Assembly (NCBI GenBank): GCA_016748015.1
Contig: JAAOMT010000263.1
Span: 64,193 to 128,192, forward strand
Direction of reading: 5' to 3'
DNA from: Geosiphon pyriformis uo1
Lineage: Eukaryota; Fungi; Glomeromycota
DNA length: 64,000 nt
Below the pieces are notes generated by a model. It did no database searches. It saw nothing but the letters and a program-made list of their open reading frames with translations, and was not told where the DNA came from. Position numbers and translations under genes: made by a program. Positions 24,800 to 40,145 of this stretch are shown one piece after another; position 1 is the first letter of the stretch; each line of letters begins with the position of its first letter.

Positions 24800-26190
24800 A
24801 TTTTGAAAGAAATTAATATAAGTATTAAAATTTAATGAAAACTTGTAAAAAAAAAGTTTGTAAATTTGATCAAGGATGGCTAAAAACTAATATTTTATAA
24901 TCAAAAAGTAGGTTTATTTAAAAAATTTAGTAAAATAATATTTTACCAAAAATTATATCAAAACTTTAATTTTTTTGAATATAACAAATATATTCTTTTA
25001 AATACATATTTTTTGTTTTTAAAATTACTGTGTCTAATACGGTGCGCGAGGAGGTAGAATTTACCGATTTCAAAGGACTGGTTAAGATTTGTGTTTTAAG
25101 GGGACGTGAAAACTTCAATAGACTTAACGTTAGTGGATTAGACGTTGCACCTAGCTTGTTAATATACAGGTGTCGTATAGTTACATGGGCTATGTACGTA
25201 GATAACGAAAGCAATAAAAAAAATTACTGTTGTTATTTATACAGTATTAAAAAGTTTCATAGTATAATTTTCAATTGTATTAACTTGCTTTATATCTATA
25301 TTTTGCTCAATTAAGATTAATAAATATATATTTTAATTATAACAAAAAAGCAAAATTTATTTTTTTATATTACATTATTCATAATTGGTATGATTAATTA
25401 AATAATTAATAATTTTTAAAAAGTAATGATTAAAACATAAAATATAATACTTGTGTCATATTTTATTTTTCTTAATAAGTTAAAAATTGATATTTTGATA
25501 TTATAAATTTGTAAATTTATATAAATTAAATGTATAAGTTTTTTTATTATAATTATTTATATAATCAAAAATTAACTAATAAATATAATTTTTATTTTAA
25601 AATTTAAATTTAATTCTTTTTTATATTAAAATAATGAGTTGAAAATTATTATTATTATTATTATTATTTATTATTGATCAAAATTAAAACAGCCAAATAC
25701 TAAAAAGAAGTGTTAAAGCTATTATTATTTATTTTTAATTAATTAATTAATAATTTTAAATAAATAAATTAAAGCTTTGTTAAAAATAAAAATTTTCTAT
25801 AATTTTGTGATCAGATTAATTAAAATAAAGTTATTATTCATTAATTATTTTAACATTTGTTATTTTTAAAATTTATTTATTTATTGATTTTCAAATACTT
25901 GATTTCAGTTATGGTCATTTTTAAATTTTATACTTTTGTTAAAAATTACTTATAATTGTTGTTTAAAATCAAAAGAATTCTAATTTAAAACCGAATTATT
26001 TTTGATTATGTACAATTAAATGCAATTCGCTTCTGATAGGCTTTGTAGAGCTTTTGAGACTAATAGTGTGTCACTTTTGAATGACGCGTAGTGCAGCCTT
26101 TATTGGCCCGAGTGGCTGGTCACATGTATTTTAGAGTATTTTTTGCTGTATCGTAGTAAGTAGTGGTTAGGCCGCACTCGTTAAAATAAG
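24800..26190 (+). mobile_element. Decayed retroelement relic with two preserved GC-richer islands (~25030-25210 and ~26020-26190); probable LINE 3' end
   Basis: Hyper-AT tract. The island at 26100-26142 resembles the 3' UTR of the LINE at ~4040-4077. Confidence 0.4.
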
Positions 26191-26768
26191 AATTTTAAAA
26201 ACATTCATATGTATTTTAATTACATTGTGAAAAAAAAACATATTCACAATATAGAAAAATTATGCAAAATGTTCAAATAAGAATTATCAAAGCTCAGCTG
26301 AAGAAATTTAAAAATGATTAGAAAGTAATTTTATATTCAAGGTGTTGTGAATTCAGCTATTTTTATGAAATTATTTACGTTTAAGAATAATATAGATGAT
26401 GTTACTTATAGACATATCAATCTTTGGGAGTCTTGAAGTTTATGTCTATGTGTCTATTTTTTAATATTTTAATAAAATTATTCGAAACGTGACACTGGAA
26501 GTCATATGTGAATAAGCAGAAGGCTCTTTTTTGTTTTAATGAACAAGAATCAGATGAAGAATATGGTTCAGTGATAATAATAAATATCAGTAATTGTGCA
26601 CAACAGGAGCCTTTCTATAAAGCCATAATTAGCTATAGGTATTGGAACTTCTGCTTTAGGGTGTTAGATTTTTTTTGCAGGGGAAATAATAGAATTGGTA
26701 AAATTGTTAGGAATTGCGCATTCTAAACTTTCTATTTATATATCTTTGAGGATCAGAAAATTATTTTT

Positions 26769-28477
26769 TTAAATAAAGTTTACAGTTTGATACCCGGTTT
26801 TAATACGTCTCTCTCCTGTACTTGCTAAATTCTTATACCCATCACAATTGGAAAACAGCACATTCAAGAAAGGCCCAAAATGGTCGGCAAAATTTTCGGT
26901 CGATCCTTTGTTGATACATTGCTTGGAAAAAGAGTTTTAAATATCAATTATGCTAGAAACCAAATTTGGCTATAAAATGAATGTACTAAACTTACTGAAC
27001 TCTCAGGTGAAGCAATGAATTGATCTTTTCGTTGTCGCAATGAACATATATACGCTGGTCCTCCCGGGCTACTCGCCCAAATCTCAATTCCACTATGTAT
27101 ATATTTTTGAGTTTCATCTTCTACTGGTTTTCTTGGTACTGGGTCATTTCCCGTAGTAAATCGGAAGACGTTTGCAGCCATGTCAACAGCAAGCGAAAAG
27201 GGTCCATTACCAATGCGTGGTTGGCCAAAAGTAAATACAACCAATTTGATGTCTCTTAAAATAGCATTCTTGTTTAATGTCACAGACATCAATTGAGCGT
27301 ATACTGTGATTGATGGATAAAACTTTAATAATTTGAAATTTTCAAAAATCTTTTTAAATAATTCTCTTTGAGGACTTACCGCCACCGAGACTATAACCAA
27401 TAAGCTGAACAATTTTGGGTTTGTTCTCTTTTATAAACGCAAGTGCTTTAGCGAGAAATTTTTTTTCCCATTCTTGGTATAGTTTGAATAATATAGCGTT
27501 AACTTTAACCCCGGGTGACCCCGATACATCCACCATATTTACTCCATCTCCATTTAGAATTTCAGACAAATCCATTTCGTCTCCACTAAATAAAAAGAGC
27601 ACTGATTTTCGAGAGTAAACGCCCACTCCTTGGAAATTGAAATTTAAGAACCATGTGAATATAACTTTTGGATTGTAATTTCAAAAAAAATTTTACCATA
27701 AATTTTATCAAATATCGTCTTGTTCATCTTCGCATGGCAATATGCATCTTTGGCACGAAGAGCCAATTCTTTGAAAATTTTATATATTTGTTGATTCACA
27801 GTCTTAAGAGGTACAGAATTTTCTGGTGGGGATTTTTCCACTTTTTGAAATGTTGGAACTTGCGTGATAGCATAAATATTCTCATTTGAATAGTTTTTTG
27901 TGTCAAACTCTTTTGAATCAAAAATATTTTGCGATGATAAATTTTCGGGATTATTGGTTAAAGATATTTGTTCATATCCATCGAGGGGCAATTTTTCAAT
28001 ATTGTTGAAAATGTAATGACTAGATTTTAAAAAAGGAGAATCAAATTGTATTTCAGGCTCAAAAATTTGATCAAAGGGATCTTCAACATTTTGAATCGGT
28101 TCTTGCTGGCTAATAGTGTCGATAATTTTATTTTCTAATGATATCTCATTCTGTATGTCATTTGTTGTTGGAATTTCAAACGAGTCTTGAGTTTTTTCTA
28201 ATAAATTAAATGAATTAGACTCCTCACTTTTAAGTTTTTCTTCCTTAACTGGGAAATCTTTCAAGAAAATTTCTGGTGATTTCGCAAAAATATCTTCAGG
28301 AATGCTTAACAGAAAGTCTTCTAGTTGAGGGATATTTTCGATAATGGGTATTGCTACTACCAAGCCTAGGAAGACATTAAGCAATGTAGCAAATGCAAGA
28401 AAATACATAAATTGTTCCCATTTTTTAACTTTTGTCAATTTGAACTGTTTTTTCAACGAATGACTCTTTTGCATCAT
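26769..28477 (-). CDS. Secreted class-3 lipase (Lipase_3), catalytic triad intact (exons 28477 or 28408-27697, 27628-27380, 27303-26996, 26921-26769)
   Basis: Signal-like segment MYFLAFATLLNVFLGLVVA and a long acidic pro-region. Motifs AKDAYC, nucleophile elbow GYSLGG, TFGQPRIGN, NDPVPR (Asp), YIHSGIEIW, DHFGPF (His). Three GT-AG introns keep the frame. Confidence 0.88.
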
Positions 28478-28914
28478 TTTTCTGCACAATGACCTTAGCA
28501 ATATCAGTTAAGTGACGAGAAACTTGATTTTGTAATACAGTTTTGAAGCGTTTATCTATTTGCCTTTTAACAAAGGATGGATTAATTTTTTTATTTGAAC
28601 GAGAGCTAACCAAGTAAAACACGTTAATAGACAACATTAATAAAACTAAACAAATACACAAAAGATTCTCAAATCAAAAGATGTCGACTTTAAGAAAGTA
28701 AAATCGGGAGGTTTCGATGCTGATCGAAATTTCAGTTCATATCGCAATTGTGTGAAGATCGATATGAAACAAGTGTCGCATTCAATAAATACAAAACATT
28801 AATTTAAGCTTTGATTTTTGTTTTCATCATTTCAATGGGTTTTATAAATATTTTCGGATCTTTCTCTTTTCGTAAAGAGTGACTCACATATGTTCGACTT
28901 TAGAATACATGTAT

Positions 28915-29060
28915 ATGGTCTCATAAGATATGGGGTATGCTGTAACAAAACCAAATAAAGTCAGCATGCAAAGTGGAACTAGTCAGGAAATAAAAAATTC
29001 CCTACCTTCATATTCATTCATCTCGAAAAGAGTCGTGGGAAACCAAGTCTGGTATCATGG
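28915..29060 (-). ncRNA. Candidate Fanzor omegaRNA scaffold remnant
   Basis: Overlaps and follows the Fanzor-like ORF end. Inverted repeats: acca/tggt (29042-29053), ttccc/gggaa (28998-29041) and atgctg/cagcat (28937-28967). Position-based inference only. Confidence 0.35.
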
Positions 29061-29345
29061 GTGTGAGGAGTTCATTTGCAAAATTGTACCTTGAGTGCTT
29101 GGCATCATGGCAATAGTTGATGGTCAGCAGCTAAAATAACCGATACTCCAGACAGAGCAATGTTTTCAGCTGCATTCACATTCCTTTCTTGTGTTTTGTA
29201 CTTGAATCTCTTTGCTGGACACTAGGAATAAACACATTCAATTACGCCATGCAGGCAAACAACCTACTCCTTTCCAACAATTGTGTAGGCTTAATGGAAA
29301 GGATTTTTGAAAAACAGTATTGACAAGAAGATTGTATTCTCTCTA
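29014..29345 (-). pseudogene. Decayed C-terminus of a Fanzor (eukaryotic TnpB-like RNA-guided nuclease)
   Basis: Manual minus-strand translation across two frameshifts: SSCQYCFSKI / H*AYTIVGKE*VVCLHGVIECVYS*CPAKRFKYKTQERNVNAAENIALSGVSVILAADHQLLP / DAKHSRYNFANELLTPMIPDLVSHDSFRDE*. This is a zinc finger (CxxC...CxxxxC) followed by the RuvC-III motif R[D>N]xNAAxNI. Confidence 0.75.
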
Positions 29346-30450
29346 AAAATAGAAAAATAAAAGAATCTTCTTTTTATATATAACATAACACAGACAATAA
29401 TTAGTATATAAACATAAAATTTTACTTATTTAATAAAATATTATCAGACTTTATTTTAAATACAACTTAAATTTTAAAAGTAATAAATAAATTGACTACT
29501 TTATTTTTTGTTTTATTGTTTACTATAATATAATTATTACTATAAAACTGCCTTATTAACATATTAAAATAAAGATTTAAAATTGCACCAACTGTTTAAA
29601 AAAAGTTATATGATTTAAAAATCAAATTTTCACACAATTATTAATATAAACAAAAAAATATTTTTGTAATAGGATATACATAAAAAATTACCATATTTTA
29701 AAATATATTCTATTATTTTTAACAAAAAATTTGGCATATTAGTATTAATTTAAATTTAAAAAACATATATGTATTTTCAAACATATTGTTTTTATTACTA
29801 AAATTCTATAAGTTTTGTGCTGTTAAAGTTATTAATACTTTCCAAAAGAAGTGGTCTGTTACTTTACTTACATATTTATAATAATTTACAAAATAATAGT
29901 GGTTTAATATAAGTAATTTAAAAAATCTTAATATTGTATAATTTATAACACAAAAACATTAAATTAGTTAAAAACTTTTAAAGTAAAAATATATAATATG
30001 AAATTAAATTACAAAAAGCATAAGCATATATACATAAGATGTTTTTATATATGTATTCCTTAATATATTAAATAATAAAAATATAATTGAATACTAAAAA
30101 GTTTTTTATTTTTTAAAATTAGACTGCAATTGTAACTGCGAATTCAAATATAAACTTTCAAATTAATCATGTAATACTTGTTAATACTTACAGAATTATT
30201 TGGAATTTAAAGCTTTTAAAAATTATCTGGCTTGCAAAAATTTCAATATTTTCTTTTGGCAAGTGCTAACTCTTAGATAGTCTAAGTCCAAAAGTTTACT
30301 AATGACTTTTTTCACAAATTTAAGCTATTAAAAATTGGCAAATTTGACACTTTAAAAGTCATAAAAAATATCAAGACTTTATAATTTCCAGTGCTGATAC
30401 TTTTTCTATTAAAATATAAGTGGTAAAAATCTTTTCACAAATATATTCAT
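29345..30450. repeat. Hyper-AT decayed tract, probably the rest of the Fanzor-carrying element
   Basis: Contiguous with the Fanzor-like remnant on its 5' side; too mutated to read RuvC-I/II. Confidence 0.4.
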
Positions 30451-30529
30451 CCGTTTGTAAAAAAATGAGTTTAAAGATATTATTTGTCCAAAATCAATAT
30501 ACAGCAATAATGAATAAAAATATATTATC

Positions 30530-31310
30530 ATGACTAAACCAATATTAATCTTCTTTTTTTAGACCCAGTACCTTTGGCAAAAAAATATGAAAACAAAGAT
30601 AAAACTCTACTACATAGAAAAAGGCTGAGAAATTGCTAATATTTCAATTAATTGGTGTTATTATTCTGAAAATGAACCAAGAACTCTTCTCTTTCAGATG
30701 AAGGAGAAGAATAAAAAAATTTGTTTCTCACTAAATTAAGAGAATTGCTTGCCAGTCAAGATACCAAAGCTCTGGATATAAAATATGAGTTTGTGTGCTG
30801 GGAAGCGGATGTTAAGTATCCAAGTAAAATATTCAAGCTCACTCGAGTGGATAACAAAAGAAACATCAAAGCCATGAAAGTAATTGTAGTTGAAGGCCAC
30901 CAATCTATGCGTATTCCCAAACTACTAGCTCTGGCTGACCTAAAAATCTACGTTGAGGCTGATCCTGATAATTGCTTAATTTGGAAATTTCAACGAGTCC
31001 TTATTACACTAAGGAGAAAGGTAAGGATACTGCAAGCAAAGGATCTTTCAGAGGAAGCTTCGGTGTTTCCAAAAAGAAAGGCTCGAAGCGTGTAAAACAA
31101 GATTTAAAAATTTATTGGCCAGCAGTCAAGGAGGGAGAAGAAAAAACTATTATTCCCTACAAGAAATACGCCGACCTCACCTTCAACAACGCACCTGGGA
31201 GGAACTAGCCAGAATACCGAAAAGATCAAATCCTGGATTGATCCCCTAAAGCCTATGAAAGGGGTTGGAAATAGCCAAGCAGGAATTAGCGAAAGAAAAA
31301 GCTTTAAATA
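30530..31310 (+). pseudogene. Intronless, frameshifted uridine/nucleoside-kinase-like (P-loop) gene, possibly of bacterial origin
   Basis: Degenerate P-loop MTKPILIFFF/RPSTFGK; ISINWCYY (cf. xDxYY); VIVVEG...LADLKIYVEADPDNCLIWKFQR; YWPAVKEGEEKTIIPYKKYADLTFNN. These are collinear with uridine kinase motifs, with several frameshifts. Confidence 0.7.
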
Positions 31311-31688
31311 AAATCTCGCCTATATGACTAATCCCACTATGTTAATAATGATGGGAATAATTGTGTTTTTAGTGTCTGATCTTCAATTATGTAACCAATA
31401 CTTTGATCGTGTTGATAATTTTTTATATTAAAGATTGAAATAGCATATTGAGAAATCCGTCTGATCAAATAATATAAAATGAAAGACTTATTATTATTTT
31501 ATTAATTCATAATTTCTAATAGAATTTGACAGGAAATCTTTTCAAAAGTATTAATGAAACCATAGTAAAAATTTCGAAATTATACCCAAAAAATAATTTA
31601 ACTTTACTGGATTTAATCTGCAATTTGAGATTTAAAAGACACAATTCCGATCAAAGGAAAAACCTCAATACTTGTACATATGTAAAAT

Positions 31689-33297
31689 CTAAAATGAGGT
31701 GAATGCCACTTCAGATTTGAGCTTTAACAAATTCTCAACATCTTTGCAACCCTCAAATGATAATCCTAAATAAGGACCAAAATAGTCGTTCGGAGTTGTT
31801 TTGGAATCCTTATTTATGCATTTCTTTGAGACGACAAAAAATTTCAATTATCAACAAGGAATCAAATTTGCGGAACTTTTAATTCTAAGCAGAAAATATC
31901 AAAATACCTCGCTTTCACCGGCCATATTTAACGTCTCATTTTCTAGAGGACAAGAAAAAATTGGTCCGGTTCCTGTATCCCAAATTTCAGTTCCACTGTG
32001 AACATACTTTTCTCCCTGATATTCAATTGGTTGTCTTGGCACTGGATCATGACCATGAGTAAATCGAATTACTTTAGCAACTTGATTAAGAGCCAAAGCA
32101 AATTTAGCGTTGCCAAGGCGTGGTTGTCCAAAAGTAGTTATACTTAATTGTATACTTTTGTCAATTTTCTCACTGAGAGAAAGTCCGACAAGTTGCGCAA
32201 GAACTTGATTAAAACAAAATTCTGTTAGATTTTAGAATATCTACTATATTAGAAAAGTGACAAACTTACCACCACTGTAACCAAACCCGACAAGGCTAAC
32301 CTTGTCGATTTGACTTTGCGATATTGAAATCAAAATTGTTTCAACAAGATTTTGCACAAATTTGTCATAAATTTCATAAGAGCAATTATTGACCTTGGCT
32401 CCTGATTTACCTGGGTATGAAACAAGCTTGCAACCAGTATTTGATAATGCAAGTTGTAACTTACCATCATCCGCTGCAATGGCTAATGATAATTTTGTCT
32501 TATCGCTGGGGTCACCTTTGAATATCAGAAAGTTATCTTGTAATCTTCCGTCTGAACGAATCTCAAGGAGAAATAATATGAAGAGTATTTACCCCTAGTT
32601 ACTGTAGAAGAAGTGTTCTCAATTTTTCTTTTGCAGTAAGCAACTTTTGCGCCCACAACAAAAAATTTATATTCATTTTCTTCTTCTTCGGTAATGGGCT
32701 GAAGAGTTGATCCTATTTTATAATAATTTTTGCTGTCTCTCCAGATTGACTCATTAGCATTATACGGGTTCACAAAACTCAATTTAGAAGATGAAGTGCT
32801 GAGTGGGTCTGTATTAGAATTTGGTCAAGGTTTAAACAAATAATGTCTTGAATCGATCTTATATATGCTCAAATAAAACTCTACTTGCCATTCTGGGAAA
32901 ATATGGGCTCAAGATTTCCTGATTCTTGGCTTTCAGCGGAGCTCTGGAGAGCATTCCAGTGAATTGAAGGTAATTTGTTAAACAGATCATTGGTTTCGAG
33001 GGGATTTGGGCGAAATAATTCTGAATCATATTCCAAATTTGCATTTATATCAAAGTCATTTATTGGATCAGCCGAATATGAAGCAGTTTCATCCTTTATA
33101 TCCAGGTAACTAGAAACTTGATAATCCACTGAAGATTGGCGTTTGTTAACTGACTTAATCGGGGTGGCATTGGCGAAGAAATTATCAGGTGTTAAAAAGA
33201 AAACAAATGTGACCAAAATTATAAAGAAAATGTGATGATTCTGACAAAGTCTCAAAATCTGTTCATTTTTTTGAAAGGAAAATGTTTGGTCAGCCAT
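31689..33297 (-). CDS. Class-3 lipase paralog lacking catalytic Ser and His, a pseudo-lipase (433 aa; exons 33297-32889, 32808-32593, 32515-32270, 32203-31908, 31823-31689)
   Basis: Hydrophobic leader then KR; AKVAYC; LVGFGYSGVLAQL in place of LIGYSLGGVYAQL; TFGQPRLGN, HDPVPR, YVHSGTEIW; NDYFGPY in place of ADHFGPF. The last three introns sit at positions equivalent to the neighbouring lipase's three introns; the first intron is GC-AG. Confidence 0.82.
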
Positions 33298-34199
33298 TAA
33301 GTGCTTTATTAAACTTCTTTTTGTTAAGAAATTTTGAAAAAAGCTCAAGGTTGAAAGAGCGAGACTTGAACTTGATAAGGATATTATGTATGTTTTGTTT
33401 TCAATTTTCGGAATATTTTTACCAAACTAAAAAAAAATATTTGGAAGAATTTTTTGGTTTTCGAAAATAGGATATATATTTTTATATTTTTACAAATCTG
33501 GCAAAAGGAGTTCTTGTTATCGTTTGATTTTCAAGGAAACTTATTATAAAACACAACAATTATCGATCGATCTAAATAAATATCTTGCAAATATTTTATT
33601 TTTGGCTCGAATTCATTGAAGGGTTGTTTTCAAATTTAGCAAAAAAAAAACAAATACTCGAATCAGAAGAGGCTTTTTTAAATTTCATAAGATCCTTCTG
33701 GTCAAGATTTGTTTGAATAGCTTTTGACATTGAAAAACTCTCAATTTTCAAATAGATGATTTACTATTTTTGATAAGAAGAAAATCAAGGGTGAATTGAA
33801 TTTAAAGTTAAAAAATGCAATTTATTTATCATGAAAGTTTATCAATTGCTATTGCTTATTTTCTTGTTTTTATTTAAATCCAAAACACGAGTCTAATTAT
33901 ACTCTTGTTCTCGTGAGTCACAAAAAGTGATGATTTATCGTGGAAAATCAAGGATATTTTAAAAAGATCAAATTCATAAAAGGAAGCGAATTGAGATTTG
34001 GTTTTATGAGATTTTTTAGCGTTAAAGACAATATTTATATCAAATAAAAATTTCATTTTTGATAATAGATAATAATTTTGAAAGTTCAATTTTGTGAAAT
34101 ACTTTAAAATAATTATAAAAACCATAAATTTTGTTATCTAAATAAGAACAATATTTCTCAATGATAAAAATATTTGATAAAGTTTCCAAGATTGGATTA

Positions 34200-35520
34200 T
34201 TATTTAAAAGTTTTTATGGATTTAAGTCAAAAGAGAAATGTAATACAATAGTAAAGAGCTGAAGTTTCAATGTATATAGAAAACTGTGGCTGGATAGAAA
34301 GTCATAACATTCTACCCAAATTAAGAGATACTGATGCATGCTTATACTTTAGTTTTCAGAGTTTCTAATCAGTGTAACAATTAAAAGTTTGTTATTGTAA
34401 GTATTAATATTAATGCTGTTGTTATTATTGTTATTATAAATTTATATTATAAAAATTTTAGGTGAGAAATTTTCATTATAATTCTTATTTACAAATAACT
34501 TTTATAAAAAATAATAATTAAAATAATTAAACCTAACCAATAAATTTAATTATCTGAAATTATTTCATTTACCTTCTTATTTACTTTTTCATTACAATCT
34601 TTTTAATAAAAAAAATAAATTTAGCATAAAATATTTGTTGTATTTAGAAAAAAATAATGTAATTTTTTAAAGTTTTTATAATATTGCAATACAAAGATTG
34701 AAAATTTGTCTTTTTAATTTTTTTGTGTTCCCAATAAGATAGTTTTAAAGGGTTTTAAAAAAGTTTTAACTTTTAATAAAGAGCTGTTTTATCACAATTA
34801 TAATTTCTATTTTAATAAAATTTTTTGAAAATTATGATAAATTAATTAATGAAGCATTGTTTGTTTTTTGTATTTTTTGATTTCTTTAATATCATAGTAC
34901 TTTTTAAACCTAAATAACCATTCTTGAATTTCTTGAAAATTAACAATGTTTATAAGCTGAGAAAATTATTAGCTTTTTAAAACAAGATATCTTCAAAAAA
35001 ATGACAAGTTTGCATTGTTTGTTTGGTTAAATGATAATGCTAATTATTATTTAATTTGGGTATTTTTTCTATTTTAAGATTAAAGAATATATGTATTAAA
35101 ACTTTTGTTAAGAAATTCATTTTATTTTAAAAATAATTTTTGAGTCTGCTATAAATATATAAAATATTCAATAAGTGAAATCTTTCTTTTAATATTTGAA
35201 ATATCAATTTGGTCTGTAATGTTGTTATAATTATCAAAATAAATGTTTTGAAAATTTGAATTTAATTAAATGGTTTGTTCAATTAAATAATGTTTTTACA
35301 GATACTCAAGTCAAAAATTGATATAATAAATGATAGGGTAATACGATTATCATTATTCCGCCAACAATAGTAAAAGATTGTTCGTTAATCCGAAGATCAC
35401 TTTGGATTGTCCAACATCAGGGATTCATGCATAGAAATTCACAAATTTTAAAACCATTACACTGCTTGTGAAACACGCCGAAATTAACACTTCTTTTATA
35501 TTTCAATTAATGACATTGGA
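34200..35520. repeat. AT-rich decayed repeat tract with a small coding relic at ~35340-35500
   Basis: Extreme AT content. The minus strand near 35430-35465 reads CNGFKICEF, a Cys-pair fragment of unassigned TE-like origin. Confidence 0.35.
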
Positions 35521-36751
35521 TTAATAGTTAAAAATGTTTTCTTTTGGATGTGCATTGAAAATTAAAAAATAAATTGTTGGCTAACTAAAAAATTTTATTA
35601 AACAGTAAAAAAAATTGCAAAAGTCAAACACTAATTTTCAATTAATTTATATATCGAATATTATTTTGCATTGAAATTTTAATGTAGTTGTTTTTTAAAA
35701 TGTCCCCATTTAGCGTGTTATGCTTTCGATTCATATTTATGACAGAGATTTTATAATTGTATTAGTCATACTTTAACTTTTTTGCGAAAAAGCTCAAAGT
35801 TTTTTTTTCGATAAAAAACAAATTTTTAGAGGAAAGATTAAGCGTTAGATCGTTAACAAAGAAAAAAACGATAAGACTTTATGATCATGATTTTTAAAAG
35901 TTTGTTCATAACAAGTTAGTAACGAGTACTGATGCCCAACGGAAAAATCTATTTGCTATCGAGTAATTTGAAATGTCCATCCATCGATTTTTTGTCAACC
36001 AACATAGTGGCAGTTCAATAGTCTCTTCAATTTTTTTTTTAAAAAAAAGTCATTGAACCAATATAATTTCATTTCTAAGAGGCATTTCTTTGCCAAAAGT
36101 AGCTTTTAAAAACTTGCTGTTACAAAAAAAAAATTTCAACGATCAAAATATAAGGGTTATATGGACAGCCCTAAATTTTGTAGACGAATGTTATAAAGTT
36201 TTCCGTCAGCAACAAAGAAGATATTTCATAAGAATTTTTCAAATTTAAACTTGAAAAAGTTTATTAATCAAAGAATGAAAAGGTTTTTCCCGACTTGTCT
36301 CTCTTTCCGAAATATTTCACTAGGATGGATTGCATTTCCAAAAAAACAAATAATAAGAGTATTGAGTCCATCTACGTTGTCAGTCACTCTCTATCCTATC
36401 TACATTTGTCAATTGAAAAAGTATTATTTGATTCCATTAAATAGACTCACCGCATAGAAAAAACAAAGAAATCTAAATCACCTGAACGAGACTGTATATT
36501 TTATTCTGAAAATACAAACAAAAATAAATCTCAAAGAATAAGCCGAAAATATTACTCCTTTACTGAAATTATTTTTTGGCTTCTCCAATGAATCTAGTTT
36601 TGAATTGACCTTTCAAGATTATTCAGAATTTCAAAAAAAGGAAATGCTCATTAAAATTTATTCCCAATTTTAGCAACCAATTTAATGAAAACCTTCAATT
36701 CCTGCTTGAATGCTTTCAGTTACTACCTTTTGAGATTATGAATCTGTGACA

Positions 36752-36783
36752 ATTTCCATTTCCATTTCCATTTCCATTTCCAT
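36752..36783 (+). repeat. (TTTCCA)n hexanucleotide repeat
   Basis: Directly visible. Confidence 0.85.
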
Positions 36784-37663
36784 CTCAATTTCAATTTTCA
36801 TCCCCTGTTGTTCTCGTCAGCAGCACAAAAATAACACCATCAATCCACTGCATACATTTATCAAAAAATTTACTATGTGTCATGTTACCTCGTCTGATAT
36901 TGCTATGCACCCCTAAACTTTATTACCAAAGAGATTCTAGATCATTTATTTTAGGTGTCGATTATGTAAATCTCTAAACCCCCCTCCCATACAAATCATC
37001 ATTATTTGATTGTTCAAAATAGAAATCCTTTGTAATAGTAAAACTGATTTTAATTTCAAAAGACCAGTCATATTATACCAATAGGCAAATAACTAATTTC
37101 GCGTGACCGTGTACCATTGTTCCATTAGCACCATCGACATCTTGTAACTGGATGATCCATGCTCAAAATTGGGCTGACGCTAATTATTGATCGAATGTTT
37201 TTCTATCTGAAAAGATTAACAAAGGATTTTATTATTGTTACTATTAATAAGATTATTTATTAAGATTATTATTGTCATTGCTGTTGTTATACTATTTAGG
37301 CTCAACGGAAATTAGTACATGGGATGGGATGGAATGGAATGTGGTGTGATGAGTAATGTAGTACCACATAGCCGACCGATGGATAAACATCAATTGTATC
37401 ATATGGTGAATAAATAGGATGTGAAAAAGCCCATCTTCCCATTCTTACTCTTCTTTTTTCTTTTCTCTTAAGTGTGTTACGCGTTTATCATGAACATATT
37501 CTAATAATTTTCAAATCTTACCATAAAGTTAAAATAACGAGAATTTATTGCGTTCAAATAATAAAATTCTTTTTTTTTTTGAATGTAAATTTGGTTATTT
37601 TTTTTGAATTGAATTTCCCAAAAAGAAAAAGAAAACCAATTTTTTTTTACTTAATTTTTTAAA

Positions 37664-38118
37664 ATGACAAAGAGTTCAAAGCCTTTATTACCGCTCTATA
37701 ATAACCAAAAAGTTCCCGTACCAACCGATCCCATCATACCAACACTAACATCTCAGTCTCAAAAACCTGGTCTCCAAAATAATTCGTTATCAATAGATTC
37801 TTCCTCAACAAAATCTATTCTCTTTGACGATGCATTATGGCGGACAAAAAAATACAGAATTCTAACGGCGACCCTGGGAATCTTTTTATGCTCACTCTGG
37901 ATCGTATCACATTTCTCTGGTGCCTCTTTCGATATCCATATTTTAAATCAATATAAAGATAATGCGGCTGCAATGGCAGCTGCTAGCGTTATGGGCGATG
38001 GAGGCGAGGAAGGAATACATGGGATTGAAGTTCAGATCCATGGAATTTCAGGTCCGATTGGGCATAATCATGGTATACATGATATGAGTGAAGATGAGGA
38101 TGAATATGACGATGAGAC

Positions 38119-38157
<39 letters not shown>

Positions 38158-38768
38158 CGATGATGATGATGATGACGACGAAACTGAACCAGAAACGGAA
38201 TTGGAACAGGAAATCGATGATATTATTCATGATAACCCTATCGTGATCTTTAGTAAGACTTATTGTCCGTAAGTAGGGTTTTAAATTTGTGATGGGATGG
38301 ACCCCCATTACTTGAAACTTTTTCAAATTTTTAATCTTATTTTCTTTTTATAAATTTTCTTGCAGATATTCAAGACGTGCAAAGCATATTCTAGCACAAT
38401 ACGACACAAAACCTCATCCATTCGTCGTAGAAGTTGATATCAGAGGTATTAAAAACTTACCCTCTTTCTCAAATTTTTAATGTTTCAATTCATTTGAGCT
38501 TAAACATAAAAATAGAAATCTCGAAAACTTCATACATAGCTCGCTTTAAATACAAAACCTAAATATCAATTTTCATTATCATTTCAACTTCCTATTAGAT
38601 GACCAAGAAGAAGTAAAGCTCGCACTATACAAATTCTCCTATCAAGCAACCTTTCCTAATGTCTTTATTGATGGTCGATCAATCGGCGGTAGCGAGGAAT
38701 TAGCTATATTGCAGACTAATGGTCGCCTCAAAGAGTTACTTGTTGATGCGGAAGTATTGAAGGCCTAA
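37664..38768 (+). CDS. Membrane-anchored monothiol glutaredoxin, Grx6/Grx7-like (284 aa; exons 37664-38268, 38366-38445, 38599-38768)
   Basis: N-terminal TM helix ILTATLGIFLCSLWIVSHF and a poly-Asp linker. After splicing: IVIFSKTYCPYSRRAK (CPYS active site) and TFPNVFIDGRSIGGSEE. Confidence 0.92.
38119..38179 (+). repeat. (GAT)n coding microsatellite (poly-Asp)
   Basis: Directly visible inside glutaredoxin exon 1. Confidence 0.9.
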
Positions 38769-39399
38769 TTCATTCCGATTTGCATCTAATCGATGGTGAC
38801 ACGAGGAAATCTCATGATATTCATAAATATGCTCATGTAAAATAACAAAAGTTTTAAAATATGCTTTAAAATTTACCCTCAAAGATCCGTGCTCTTAGTT
38901 AAAAGGATCAATGCTTGTACAAATTTATTATATTGTACTTTAAAATATAAATATTTTAAAAAATAGTATACGCTGACTTGATCGTTTTGGATAATTAACT
39001 TTTGGTAATTATTAATTTTATTATTCGATTTGTACATATTGTGTACTCTTATTATCCGTTTAAGCTTTATTAACTTTTAAACGAAGAATAAATCAGAAAA
39101 GAAAATTACTGCTACTGTTAAAGGTCTTGTGAAAATCATTTCATTCAAGGTACCAAAAATGAAAAAATTGAATAGTGAAATCACCAAAAATCTTTTTAAT
39201 TAAACGTGCCATCTTTTGCTAGAAAATTTTCTTTCAATACCCCCCAAAAAAAGGAACGCCCGATTTGCATGTGTAACCATATTTTAAAAATCAAGATATC
39301 AAGTTTTCTCCATTTTTTAACAAATATAATATCCTGGTGTGAAAAAAAAAATCACATAACTAAATTAAAATTGAAAAAGGTTAAATTCTGCGCACATGA

Positions 39400-40145
39400 A
39401 AACCGTAAATAGCAAAAATGCTTAAACGTGAACCCACAACAAATACGCCGCTTTATTGTCAAGTACTAAAGAACAGGAAAAAGTAAAAACTTACCATGTT
39501 TCTGAAGACCACCAATTCTTAATAACTTCGAAAAAGTTTTACTAATATGTAAAGCCAAAGAAAAACGACATGCACTAGTCCACTGTCAACAATTTAAGTC
39601 TTAACTGTTGCAAATTTCACGTATCACAAAAATCAAAATAAAACCGCTTACGATTGATGGGACAAGTGTGAAATTGGGAAGCAATCACGACCGCCAAGCG
39701 ATTCAATGCTGATTGCTTGGCGCCTAATTTCAAAAGTGGACTAAAATTCGTAATGGTTTGGGAGTGTTTTGCGTGGTAAATAAAAGGACTCATTAGTATT
39801 TTGTGATGGATGATGAAAAAATAATGCTAATGCTTAAGTAGTTAACGACGATCCATGATGTAGAAAAATGGTTAACGGAAAATAAAATTGCGACCGTCAA
39901 TTTGAGAACATATGGAAACTGTTGAAGGACAATATAAAGTTTTTCCGAAATCTGTGGTCGAACTTAAAGGAGGAATTGGAGAAATTTGAAGCCTCTATTC
40001 TCGAAGAGATTATTACCTCAATGCCAAGGAGGATTGAAGCAATAATAAAGTCAAATCGAGGGCCGAAAAAGTGTCAATTAGATATTATTTTTTATTTTTT
40101 GTGTCAAATTTTGAATCTGGGGATTACTCTACATGATCACATTAT
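39400..40145 (+). mobile_element. Tc1-family transposase remnant
   Basis: PNFKSGLKFVMVWECFAW (cf. PTFKSGRKSVMVWGCF), ENIWKLLK, and SMPRRIEAIIKSNRGPKK (cf. SMPRRIxAVIxAxGGxTKY). Deleted and frameshifted; left TIR not found. Confidence 0.8.

Follow-up and report, generated by a model that had tools for sequence, protein, structure and literature searches.

A decayed 3'-terminal fragment, probably of a Fanzor1-like TIR transposon, in the genome of Geosiphon pyriformis

What is the broken coding sequence that lies on the minus strand at 29345-29014 of this stretch of Geosiphon DNA, and did it ever belong to the gene of an RNA-guided nuclease? The window, i.e., the whole stretch of 64,000 nucleotides analysed here (C436:64193-128192, from an assembly of 128.3 Mb in 792 contigs), is AT-rich and eukaryotic in composition, with a GC content of 17-38% per 2 kb. 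The ORF list of the window holds no ORF longer than 44 aa over 29345-29014, and Pfam gave no match to the separate pieces. The earlier note had nevertheless read a protein end here through three stops and two frameshifts, and translation reproduces its quoted strings exactly: the first frame gives ..SSCQYCFSKIL.., the next frame gives ..H-stop-AYTIVGKE-stop-VVCLHGVIECVYS-stop-CPAKRFKYKTQERNVNAAENIALSGVSVILAADHQLLP, and the return to the first frame gives ..CHDAKHSRYNFANELLTPMIPDLVSHDSFRDE-stop. We conclude that window 28929 to ~29330 is very probably a dead, 5'-truncated, 3'-terminal fragment of a Fanzor1-like TIR transposon, of which the final ~105 codons remain, together with a tail of ~85 nt and a TIR of 39 nt ( Table 1 ).

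Table 1. Parts of the window fragment and positions of related copies (positions without a prefix are those of the window).
Feature	Position	Strand	Basis or remark
3' TIR, 39 nt	28929..28967	-	common homology boundary of many copies; TIR consensus of the MITE alignment; motif search; flanks
Non-coding tail	28968..29013	-	conserved among copies; no structure or covariation signal (decayed copies, a weak test)
C-terminal tail codons ..CHDAKHSRYNFANELLTPMIPDLVSHDSFRDE and shared TGA stop (29016-29014)	29014..29114	-	61% identity to P0042 residues 276-306
CPAKRFKYKTQERNVNAAENIALSGVSVILAADHQ: last zinc-finger Cys (29221-29219) and RuvC-III motif	29115..29221	-	alignments A6 and A8, to 8GKH and to L081
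TNB zinc-finger spacer ..H-stop-AYTIVGKE-stop-VVCLHGVIECVYS-stop	29222..29301	-	three in-frame stops; 3-nt deletion
First Cys pair C-Q-Y-C-F-S-K-I (29325-29303), other frame	29302..29330	-	1-nt deletion
554-bp MITE/'ghost' copy	L053:1290-1835 (G000:C718, near 2169517-2170062); also L054, L063, L066, L071 and ~20 more
Inverted TIR pairs, 5.2-8.6 kb apart	G000:C669:920967-921008 + 926157-926202; C648:282797-282837 + 289962-289999; C633:293659-293699 + 302220-302272

The motif order that the earlier note had described, a CxxC...Cx4C zinc finger followed by R-N-x-N-A-A-x-N-I and a C-terminal tail, can be read in the window. The first cysteine pair, C-Q-Y-C, occupies 29325-29314, and the second, C-V-Y-S-stop-C (Cx4C, interrupted by a TAG), occupies 29236-29219; in the R-N-V-N-A-A-E-N-I-A segment, an Asn codon (AAT, 29182-29180) replaces the RuvC-III Asp, which corresponds to D606 of SpuFz1. 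The rearranged RuvC-II motif would fall at the truncation point or past it and cannot be read in the window, and the RuvC-I part is likewise missing by truncation.

The terminus of the element reads ...CCCCATA (28929), and the adjoining positions 28928-28927 are TC, where other copies have TA. Homology of the window to the family loci is confined to 28928 to ~29320, and detectable homology ends at ~29320-29330, which is the 5' truncation point. A search of the window for an inverted partner of the 3' TIR (a 5' TIR) found none, and a search of window 26000-40000 for upstream coding remnants also found none, which makes the window copy a terminal fragment truncated at its 5' end. The GC content of the fragment is 38.5%, compared with 30% and 14% in the flanks. 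The 500 nt directly upstream of the truncation point (29346-29845) have a GC content of only 14%, and no relatives of this segment were found among the family loci.

The fragment belongs to a repeat family. Fourteen other genomic sites match the 451 nt surrounding it with 66-82% identity, its 38-aa RuvC-III piece has 21 other matches, and a profile of the family finds ~40 loci, many of which have in common one 3' boundary, the end of a 39-40-nt TIR. A related protein from soil metagenomes (P0042) aligns with the window by tblastn at 58.6% identity over 58 aa and 61% over 31 aa. Searched against the whole 128-Mb genome, it gave 38 matches (best candidates scored), with E=5.5e-15 at the window locus. 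In this search no intact copy of the lineage was seen among the best candidates scored: matches longer than ~90 residues carry 3-9 stops each, and the stop-free ones are fragments of short (MITE) copies.

Long and short members can be distinguished within the family. Three long copies (C622:659000-668700, C622:464300-474000 and C673:347900-357899) have ~4 kb in common at 65-76% identity; they are full of stops and align colinearly with outside proteins as far back as RuvC-I. The short derivative is 554 bp long, has ~25 copies, retains only the final ~85 codons with their stop, followed by a tail of ~95 nt, and carries 39-40-nt TIRs at both ends (TATGGGGCGTGCTGCAACAAAACCAGACAAAGTGAACAT), which were located with a majority consensus computed solely for that purpose. 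These copies are 82-92% identical to the consensus, from which we take them to be younger than the long copies. Their flanks are TA at 7 of 8 5' ends and at 4 of 10 3' ends, so that the target-site duplication of the element is probably TA. The 5' ends of the long copies (L045-L047, L064) have a common sequence, but no TIR matching the 3' TIR. Of the element ends and target-site duplication that the earlier note asked to have defined, the analysis gives the 3' TIR and a probable TA. Separately, TIR-only matches with 88-95% identity occur, some of them in inverted pairs 5-9 kb apart; the pairs listed in Table 1 are candidates for younger, possibly autonomous elements with the same ends.

The existence of the short copies raises the question of whether a whole Fanzor gene was ever present at the window locus, since the fragment might instead descend from a short derivative of the non-autonomous MITE or 'ghost' type. 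Internally deleted derivatives are indeed common in this genome, not only as the 554-bp MITEs but also as L064, in which a 5' piece is joined to the 3' end, and the window holds no upstream remnants. However, the window copy retains ~100 nt that lie on the upstream side of the breakpoint of the MITE deletion (from CQYCFSK... to ECV), its closest relatives are copies of the long lineage (75% identity to C727, compared with 70% to the MITE consensus), and there is no 5' TIR near it. The extra ~100 nt and the 75% identity to C727 indicate that the window copy came from the long form, and we consider an origin from a short derivative improbable.

To judge the lesions of the window copy, we used a near-intact metagenome copy (L081) as the reference. 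This copy is a soil contig of 2235 bp with a GC content of 45% (JGI metagenome 3300010376, Ga0126381_100290171, 1-2235), in which at least 650 codons lie in a single frame with two stops and which ends in the same terminal TIR. The window is 70% identical to it (275 of 391 positions) and colinear with it to the common stop codon and the TIR. Relative to this reference the window has lost 1 nt near 29302, 3 nt near 29279 and 11 nt between 29115 and 29114; the last of these deletions leads into the frame of the C-terminal tail. The in-frame stops are TAA at 29293-29291, TAG at 29266-29264 and TAG at 29224-29222, and two of the three fall on CGN codons of L081, as expected from CpG decay. C>T and G>A changes make up nearly half of the substitutions (57 of 116), and the window has lost 18 of the 20 CpG sites of L081. 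The decay of the window copy is thus mostly C>T/G>A at CpG sites, which is consistent with silencing of repeats by methylation and deamination.

The same comparison bears on the cause of inactivation. The RuvC-III codon is AAT in the window and GAT in L081; across 17 family copies (alignment A6) the residue is Asp in 10 and Asn in 5 (the window and four others), and it is Asp in all outside relatives (alignment A8). The earlier note was therefore right that the catalytic Asp reads Asn and that the copy is dead; but the window copy, which has no remaining function, was killed mainly by the 5' truncation, the stops and the indels, not by D>N alone.

These lesions also weigh against the idea that the fragment was exapted by a neighbouring host gene, be it as an exon or for regulation. 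The fragment is located between a Lipase_3 gene and a PRK/uridine-kinase-like exon, either of which could be considered as the recipient; a MITE copy elsewhere forms, in the annotation, the final exon of a bZIP gene model (P0006), and a pyrimidine tract ending in AG lies just upstream, at ~29342. But three stops and two frameshifts interrupt the fragment, in which no frame stays open for more than 44 aa; its decay spectrum is neutral, and it is intergenic, outside the homology of its neighbours. We regard exaptation as very unlikely. The neighbours themselves are a class-3 lipase on the minus strand (26948-28501; Pfam Lipase_3, E=1e-9) and an exon of the PRK/uridine-kinase family on the plus strand (30721-31095, E=2.7e-6). 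A possible second lipase-like exon, recognised from ..HGHDPVPRQP.. in an ORF translation, lies ~3.4 kb off on the minus strand (31899-32096); Pfam gave no match to it at E<=0.001.

To place the family among known proteins, we built a profile (A6) from 19 stop-free C-terminal pieces of the family and used it for an exhaustive HMMER search; window and family pieces split by stops or frameshifts were searched separately, and no joined or read-through protein was used. The search returned 41 proteins at E<=1e-3, and every named one is fungal: Jimgerdemannia flammicorona RUS34296.1, Lichtheimia ramosa CDS09887.1, Mortierella spp. KAI8345659.1 and KAF9109796.1 (1285 aa), Linnemannia gamsii KAK3844920.1, Modicella reniformis KAF9987217.1 and Geosiphon pyriformis KAG9284042.1. 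The top matches, P0001 and P0042, come from soil metagenomes and have the C-terminus ...LVPRDSIRDE, as in the family. Aligned with one another (A8), the relatives show, in order, G-(T/I/D)-D-(Y/P)-G, IG(D/H)xGxGxGS..KG..RG, (N/D)-E-x-x-T-S-K-x-C-x-x-C-F, C-x4-C and R-D-x-N-A-A-x-N-I-A-x-x-G-A-S, and in several copies of the family N-E-(Y/F)-N-T-S-K-T-C-x-x-C-F is found directly upstream. A scan of metagenomes for further copies yielded short contigs only, none with a 5' end.

The better-preserved relatives keep the acidic residues of a RuvC nuclease, namely the RuvC-I Asp, the RuvC-III Asp and, in NExxTSK, a rearranged RuvC-II Glu. The RuvC-I Asp (G-x-D-x-G) is conserved in each of the six relatives that extend over this part of the protein and is D23 in P0042. 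The canonical RuvC-II place of P0042 is a Gly (G157, ..CFGHW..), an alternative Glu follows (E192, ..TNEYNTSK..), and the RuvC-III Asp is D248. Such a rearrangement, with the canonical Glu changed to Gly or Pro and an alternative Glu downstream, is a hallmark of Fanzors (PMC10530073). The spacing from Gly to Glu is 35 residues in P0042 and 36 in SpuFz1. Several features of Fanzor1 are therefore found, although distributed over different copies: the RuvC-I Asp and the rearranged RuvC-II in the relatives, the zinc finger in the window, carriage in a TIR transposon (in the window by the 3' TIR only), and the RuvC-III Asp in the lineage but not in the window copy, which has Asn.

Profile searches gave signals of different strength. 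The best family member scored 20.1 bits against Pfam PF07282 (Cas12f1-like TNB), compared with a gathering score of 26.3 (E=7.4e-4), and P0007 matched it at E=0.0088. At E<=0.01, PF07282 matched none of the long fungal relatives; and no PDB sequence matched a profile built from the C-termini of the family. With the A8 profile of the outside relatives, the only PDB match with E<0.4 was SpuFz1 (8GKH), at a marginal E=0.0085. In this alignment, the Glu and Asp of the family fall on chain residues 935 and 1000, i.e., E541 and D606 of SpuFz1, which are metal-binding, catalytic residues (PMC10432273).

The predicted fold agrees with this placement. An AF2 model of P0042, made with 36 relatives, has a pLDDT of 83.4 and a pTM of 0.81. 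In a Foldseek comparison with the PDB, its top six matches are PpFz and SpuFz (E from 2.7e-6 to 4.1e-5), followed by Cas12o, GtFz, Cas12f, ApmFz2, Cas12p and TnpB, and the best 50 Foldseek and VIA-align matches are all Fanzor, TnpB or Cas12. VIA-align superposes the model on SpuFz 367-633 with Z 13.0 and an rmsd of 4.6 over 212 residues (18% identity), and the Z values of CasPhi and Cas12f are within 1 of that of Fanzor, so that the modelled fold by itself says 'type V RuvC' and not specifically Fanzor1. Judged from the model of P0042, in which a RuvC fold is split by a zinc-ribbon TNB, membership in the TnpB/Fanzor/Cas12 superfamily is secure; the assignment as Fanzor1-like rests on the E-values, which are best for Fanzor1, on the sequence identity, which is highest with it, and on the rearranged site. 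The results support the earlier note's reading of a TnpB/Fanzor-type remnant, closest, in profile and fold, to fungal Fanzor1. That the motifs are short and that Pfam finds nothing in the window pieces could suggest a chance resemblance, or the peptide of an unrelated zinc-finger protein, but this has a negligible probability given that the fragment is colinear with P0042 at 59-61% protein identity over ~90 residues, to the same stop codon and TIR, that the locus reaches E=5.5e-15 genome-wide, and that the relatives are predicted to fold as a Fanzor/Cas12 RuvC with TNB.

It is instructive to compare the family with the known systems. SpuFz1 of Spizellomyces punctatus (element SPu-1; PDB 8GKH, 9CEU-9CEZ) has the RuvC+TNB fold in common with the relatives' model (Z 13, 18% identity, 367-633). 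Both have Gly at the canonical RuvC-II Glu, an alternative Glu ~35 residues on in DE/NE-x-x-TS-x-x-C-x-x-C (E541 in SpuFz1), a second zinc half H-G-x-x-x-C-x-x-P-x-C, and R-D at RuvC-III (D606). The SpuFz1 element, like the family, has a single ORF, 30-40-nt TIRs and a TA target-site duplication, and its ~550-nt 'ghost' loci are resembled by the 554-bp derivatives (PMC3627910, PMC10432273). The differences are these: sequence identity is only ~14-18%; RuvC-III is RDxNAAxNIA in the family, as in TnpB, and RDMLSTCN in SpuFz1; and the family has a conserved ~45-residue tail after RuvC-III. The family relatives are 650 to 1285 aa long, compared with 633-638 for SpuFz1, and they are not recognised by Pfam; the window copy is, in addition, a dead fragment.

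PpFz of Parasitella parasitica (PDB 9CF0/9CF1), a Mucoromycota Fanzor1, gives the best Foldseek E-value with the P0042 model (2.7e-6), and its host falls in the broad fungal group that also contains the hosts of the relatives; but identity is 14-16%, and PpFz is missed by the sequence profile and differs in its domain insertions (389 alignment columns, rmsd ~22 in Foldseek). Bacterial TnpB (ISDra2, PDB 8H1J) and Cas12f have the same order of RuvC-I, -II and -III, a zinc-ribbon TNB and the RDxNAAxNI motif. In contrast to them, the family lacks the canonical RuvC-II Glu and shows the Fanzor/TnpB2-type rearrangement instead, and it resides in a eukaryotic TIR transposon rather than in IS200/605. 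With the P0042 model, Foldseek gave E=1e-2 for TnpB and 1e-6 to 1e-5 for Fanzor1.

How would such an element have worked? Very probably it was an old cut-and-paste DNA transposon with 39-40-nt TIRs, a probable TA duplication and a single large gene for a Fanzor1-like RuvC nuclease. If SpuFz1 is a guide, a live element would have produced the nuclease together with an omegaRNA from its 3' end and right TIR; the guide would have been read from the flank, the protein-omegaRNA complex would have cut matching DNA, and such guided cutting would have aided the persistence of the element. What the window retains is the second half of the TNB zinc-ribbon, RuvC-III with its Asp changed to Asn, the C-terminal tail, the stop, the ~85-nt tail and the right TIR, and the same family also gave rise to the ~25 554-bp 'ghost' or MITE derivatives. 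By analogy, the omegaRNA scaffold would lie at 28968..29013. The reconstruction of an omegaRNA envisaged in the earlier note found no fold or covariation signal to build on in the 3' tails: RNAalifold on 14 copies gave 17 pairs without a compensatory change, a weak test with decayed copies, and single-sequence folds gave z-scores of -1.3 to +0.6, again a weak test under neutral decay.

Fanzors in early-diverging fungi are already known, and the lineage is a divergent branch of a known kind rather than a new system. The earlier note's 'new RNA-guided nuclease system' thus overstates the case, and the P0042 search saw no intact copy in this genome among the best candidates scored. The lineage may represent a Pfam-invisible and so far undescribed branch of Fanzor1 in Mucoromycota sensu lato (Glomeromycota, Mortierellomycota, Endogonales), whose proteins, 650-1285 aa long, have a conserved tail after RuvC-III. 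It may still be active somewhere, as L081 has only two stops in its 650 or more codons. The 3' 344 nt of L081 are 87.8% identical in DNA to the Geosiphon 554-bp consensus despite GC contents of 45% and ~30%, respectively; either the host of L081 is a related fungus or the element has spread horizontally, and the 88% identity across this GC gap hints at recent horizontal spread. The 554-bp ghosts, which keep the last 85 codons and the tail, may be guide-RNA-only loci served in trans. This combined reading, of a new Fanzor1 branch that may still be active and of ghosts as guide loci, we consider unlikely.

For the window itself the fragment has little weight, being neutral debris between genes. 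Its wider meaning is that a symbiotic, early-diverging fungus holds a graveyard of at least one divergent Fanzor1-like family with its short derivatives, which standard domain models have missed and of which one derivative has leaked into a gene model. For those who look for new compact RNA-guided nucleases, the soil metagenome contig and the Mortierella and Lichtheimia proteins are, from their sequences, candidates to test.

That the genome has hosted Fanzor-carrying transposons, as the earlier note had proposed, is borne out by the ~40 loci of this lineage and by 118 genome-wide PF07282 matches of other Fanzor lineages. The latter read ..EAYTSKTCSxCG..DRDxNGAxGIFLRAL, e.g., in L001 (C701:384126-387323), L006 and L012; the 12 loci inspected are interrupted, with open frames of at most 183 aa. 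When the family was aligned by hhalign with these other Fanzor C-termini, only a 19-column segment, NE-x-x-TSKTC-x-x-C, matched (E=1.5e-4), because the long spacer in the zinc finger blocks any extension. The leaked derivative is found in KAG9284042.1, a Geosiphon gene model of 716 aa with bZIP_1 and Aft1 domains, whose terminal exon is a ghost copy (..RINRITRERDANAAVNIALLGAS..FIQDE); its last ~56 residues are, by eye, identical to the translated short copy at G000:C784:167915-168118 (L062), which points either to a chimeric annotation or to exonisation of a transposon.
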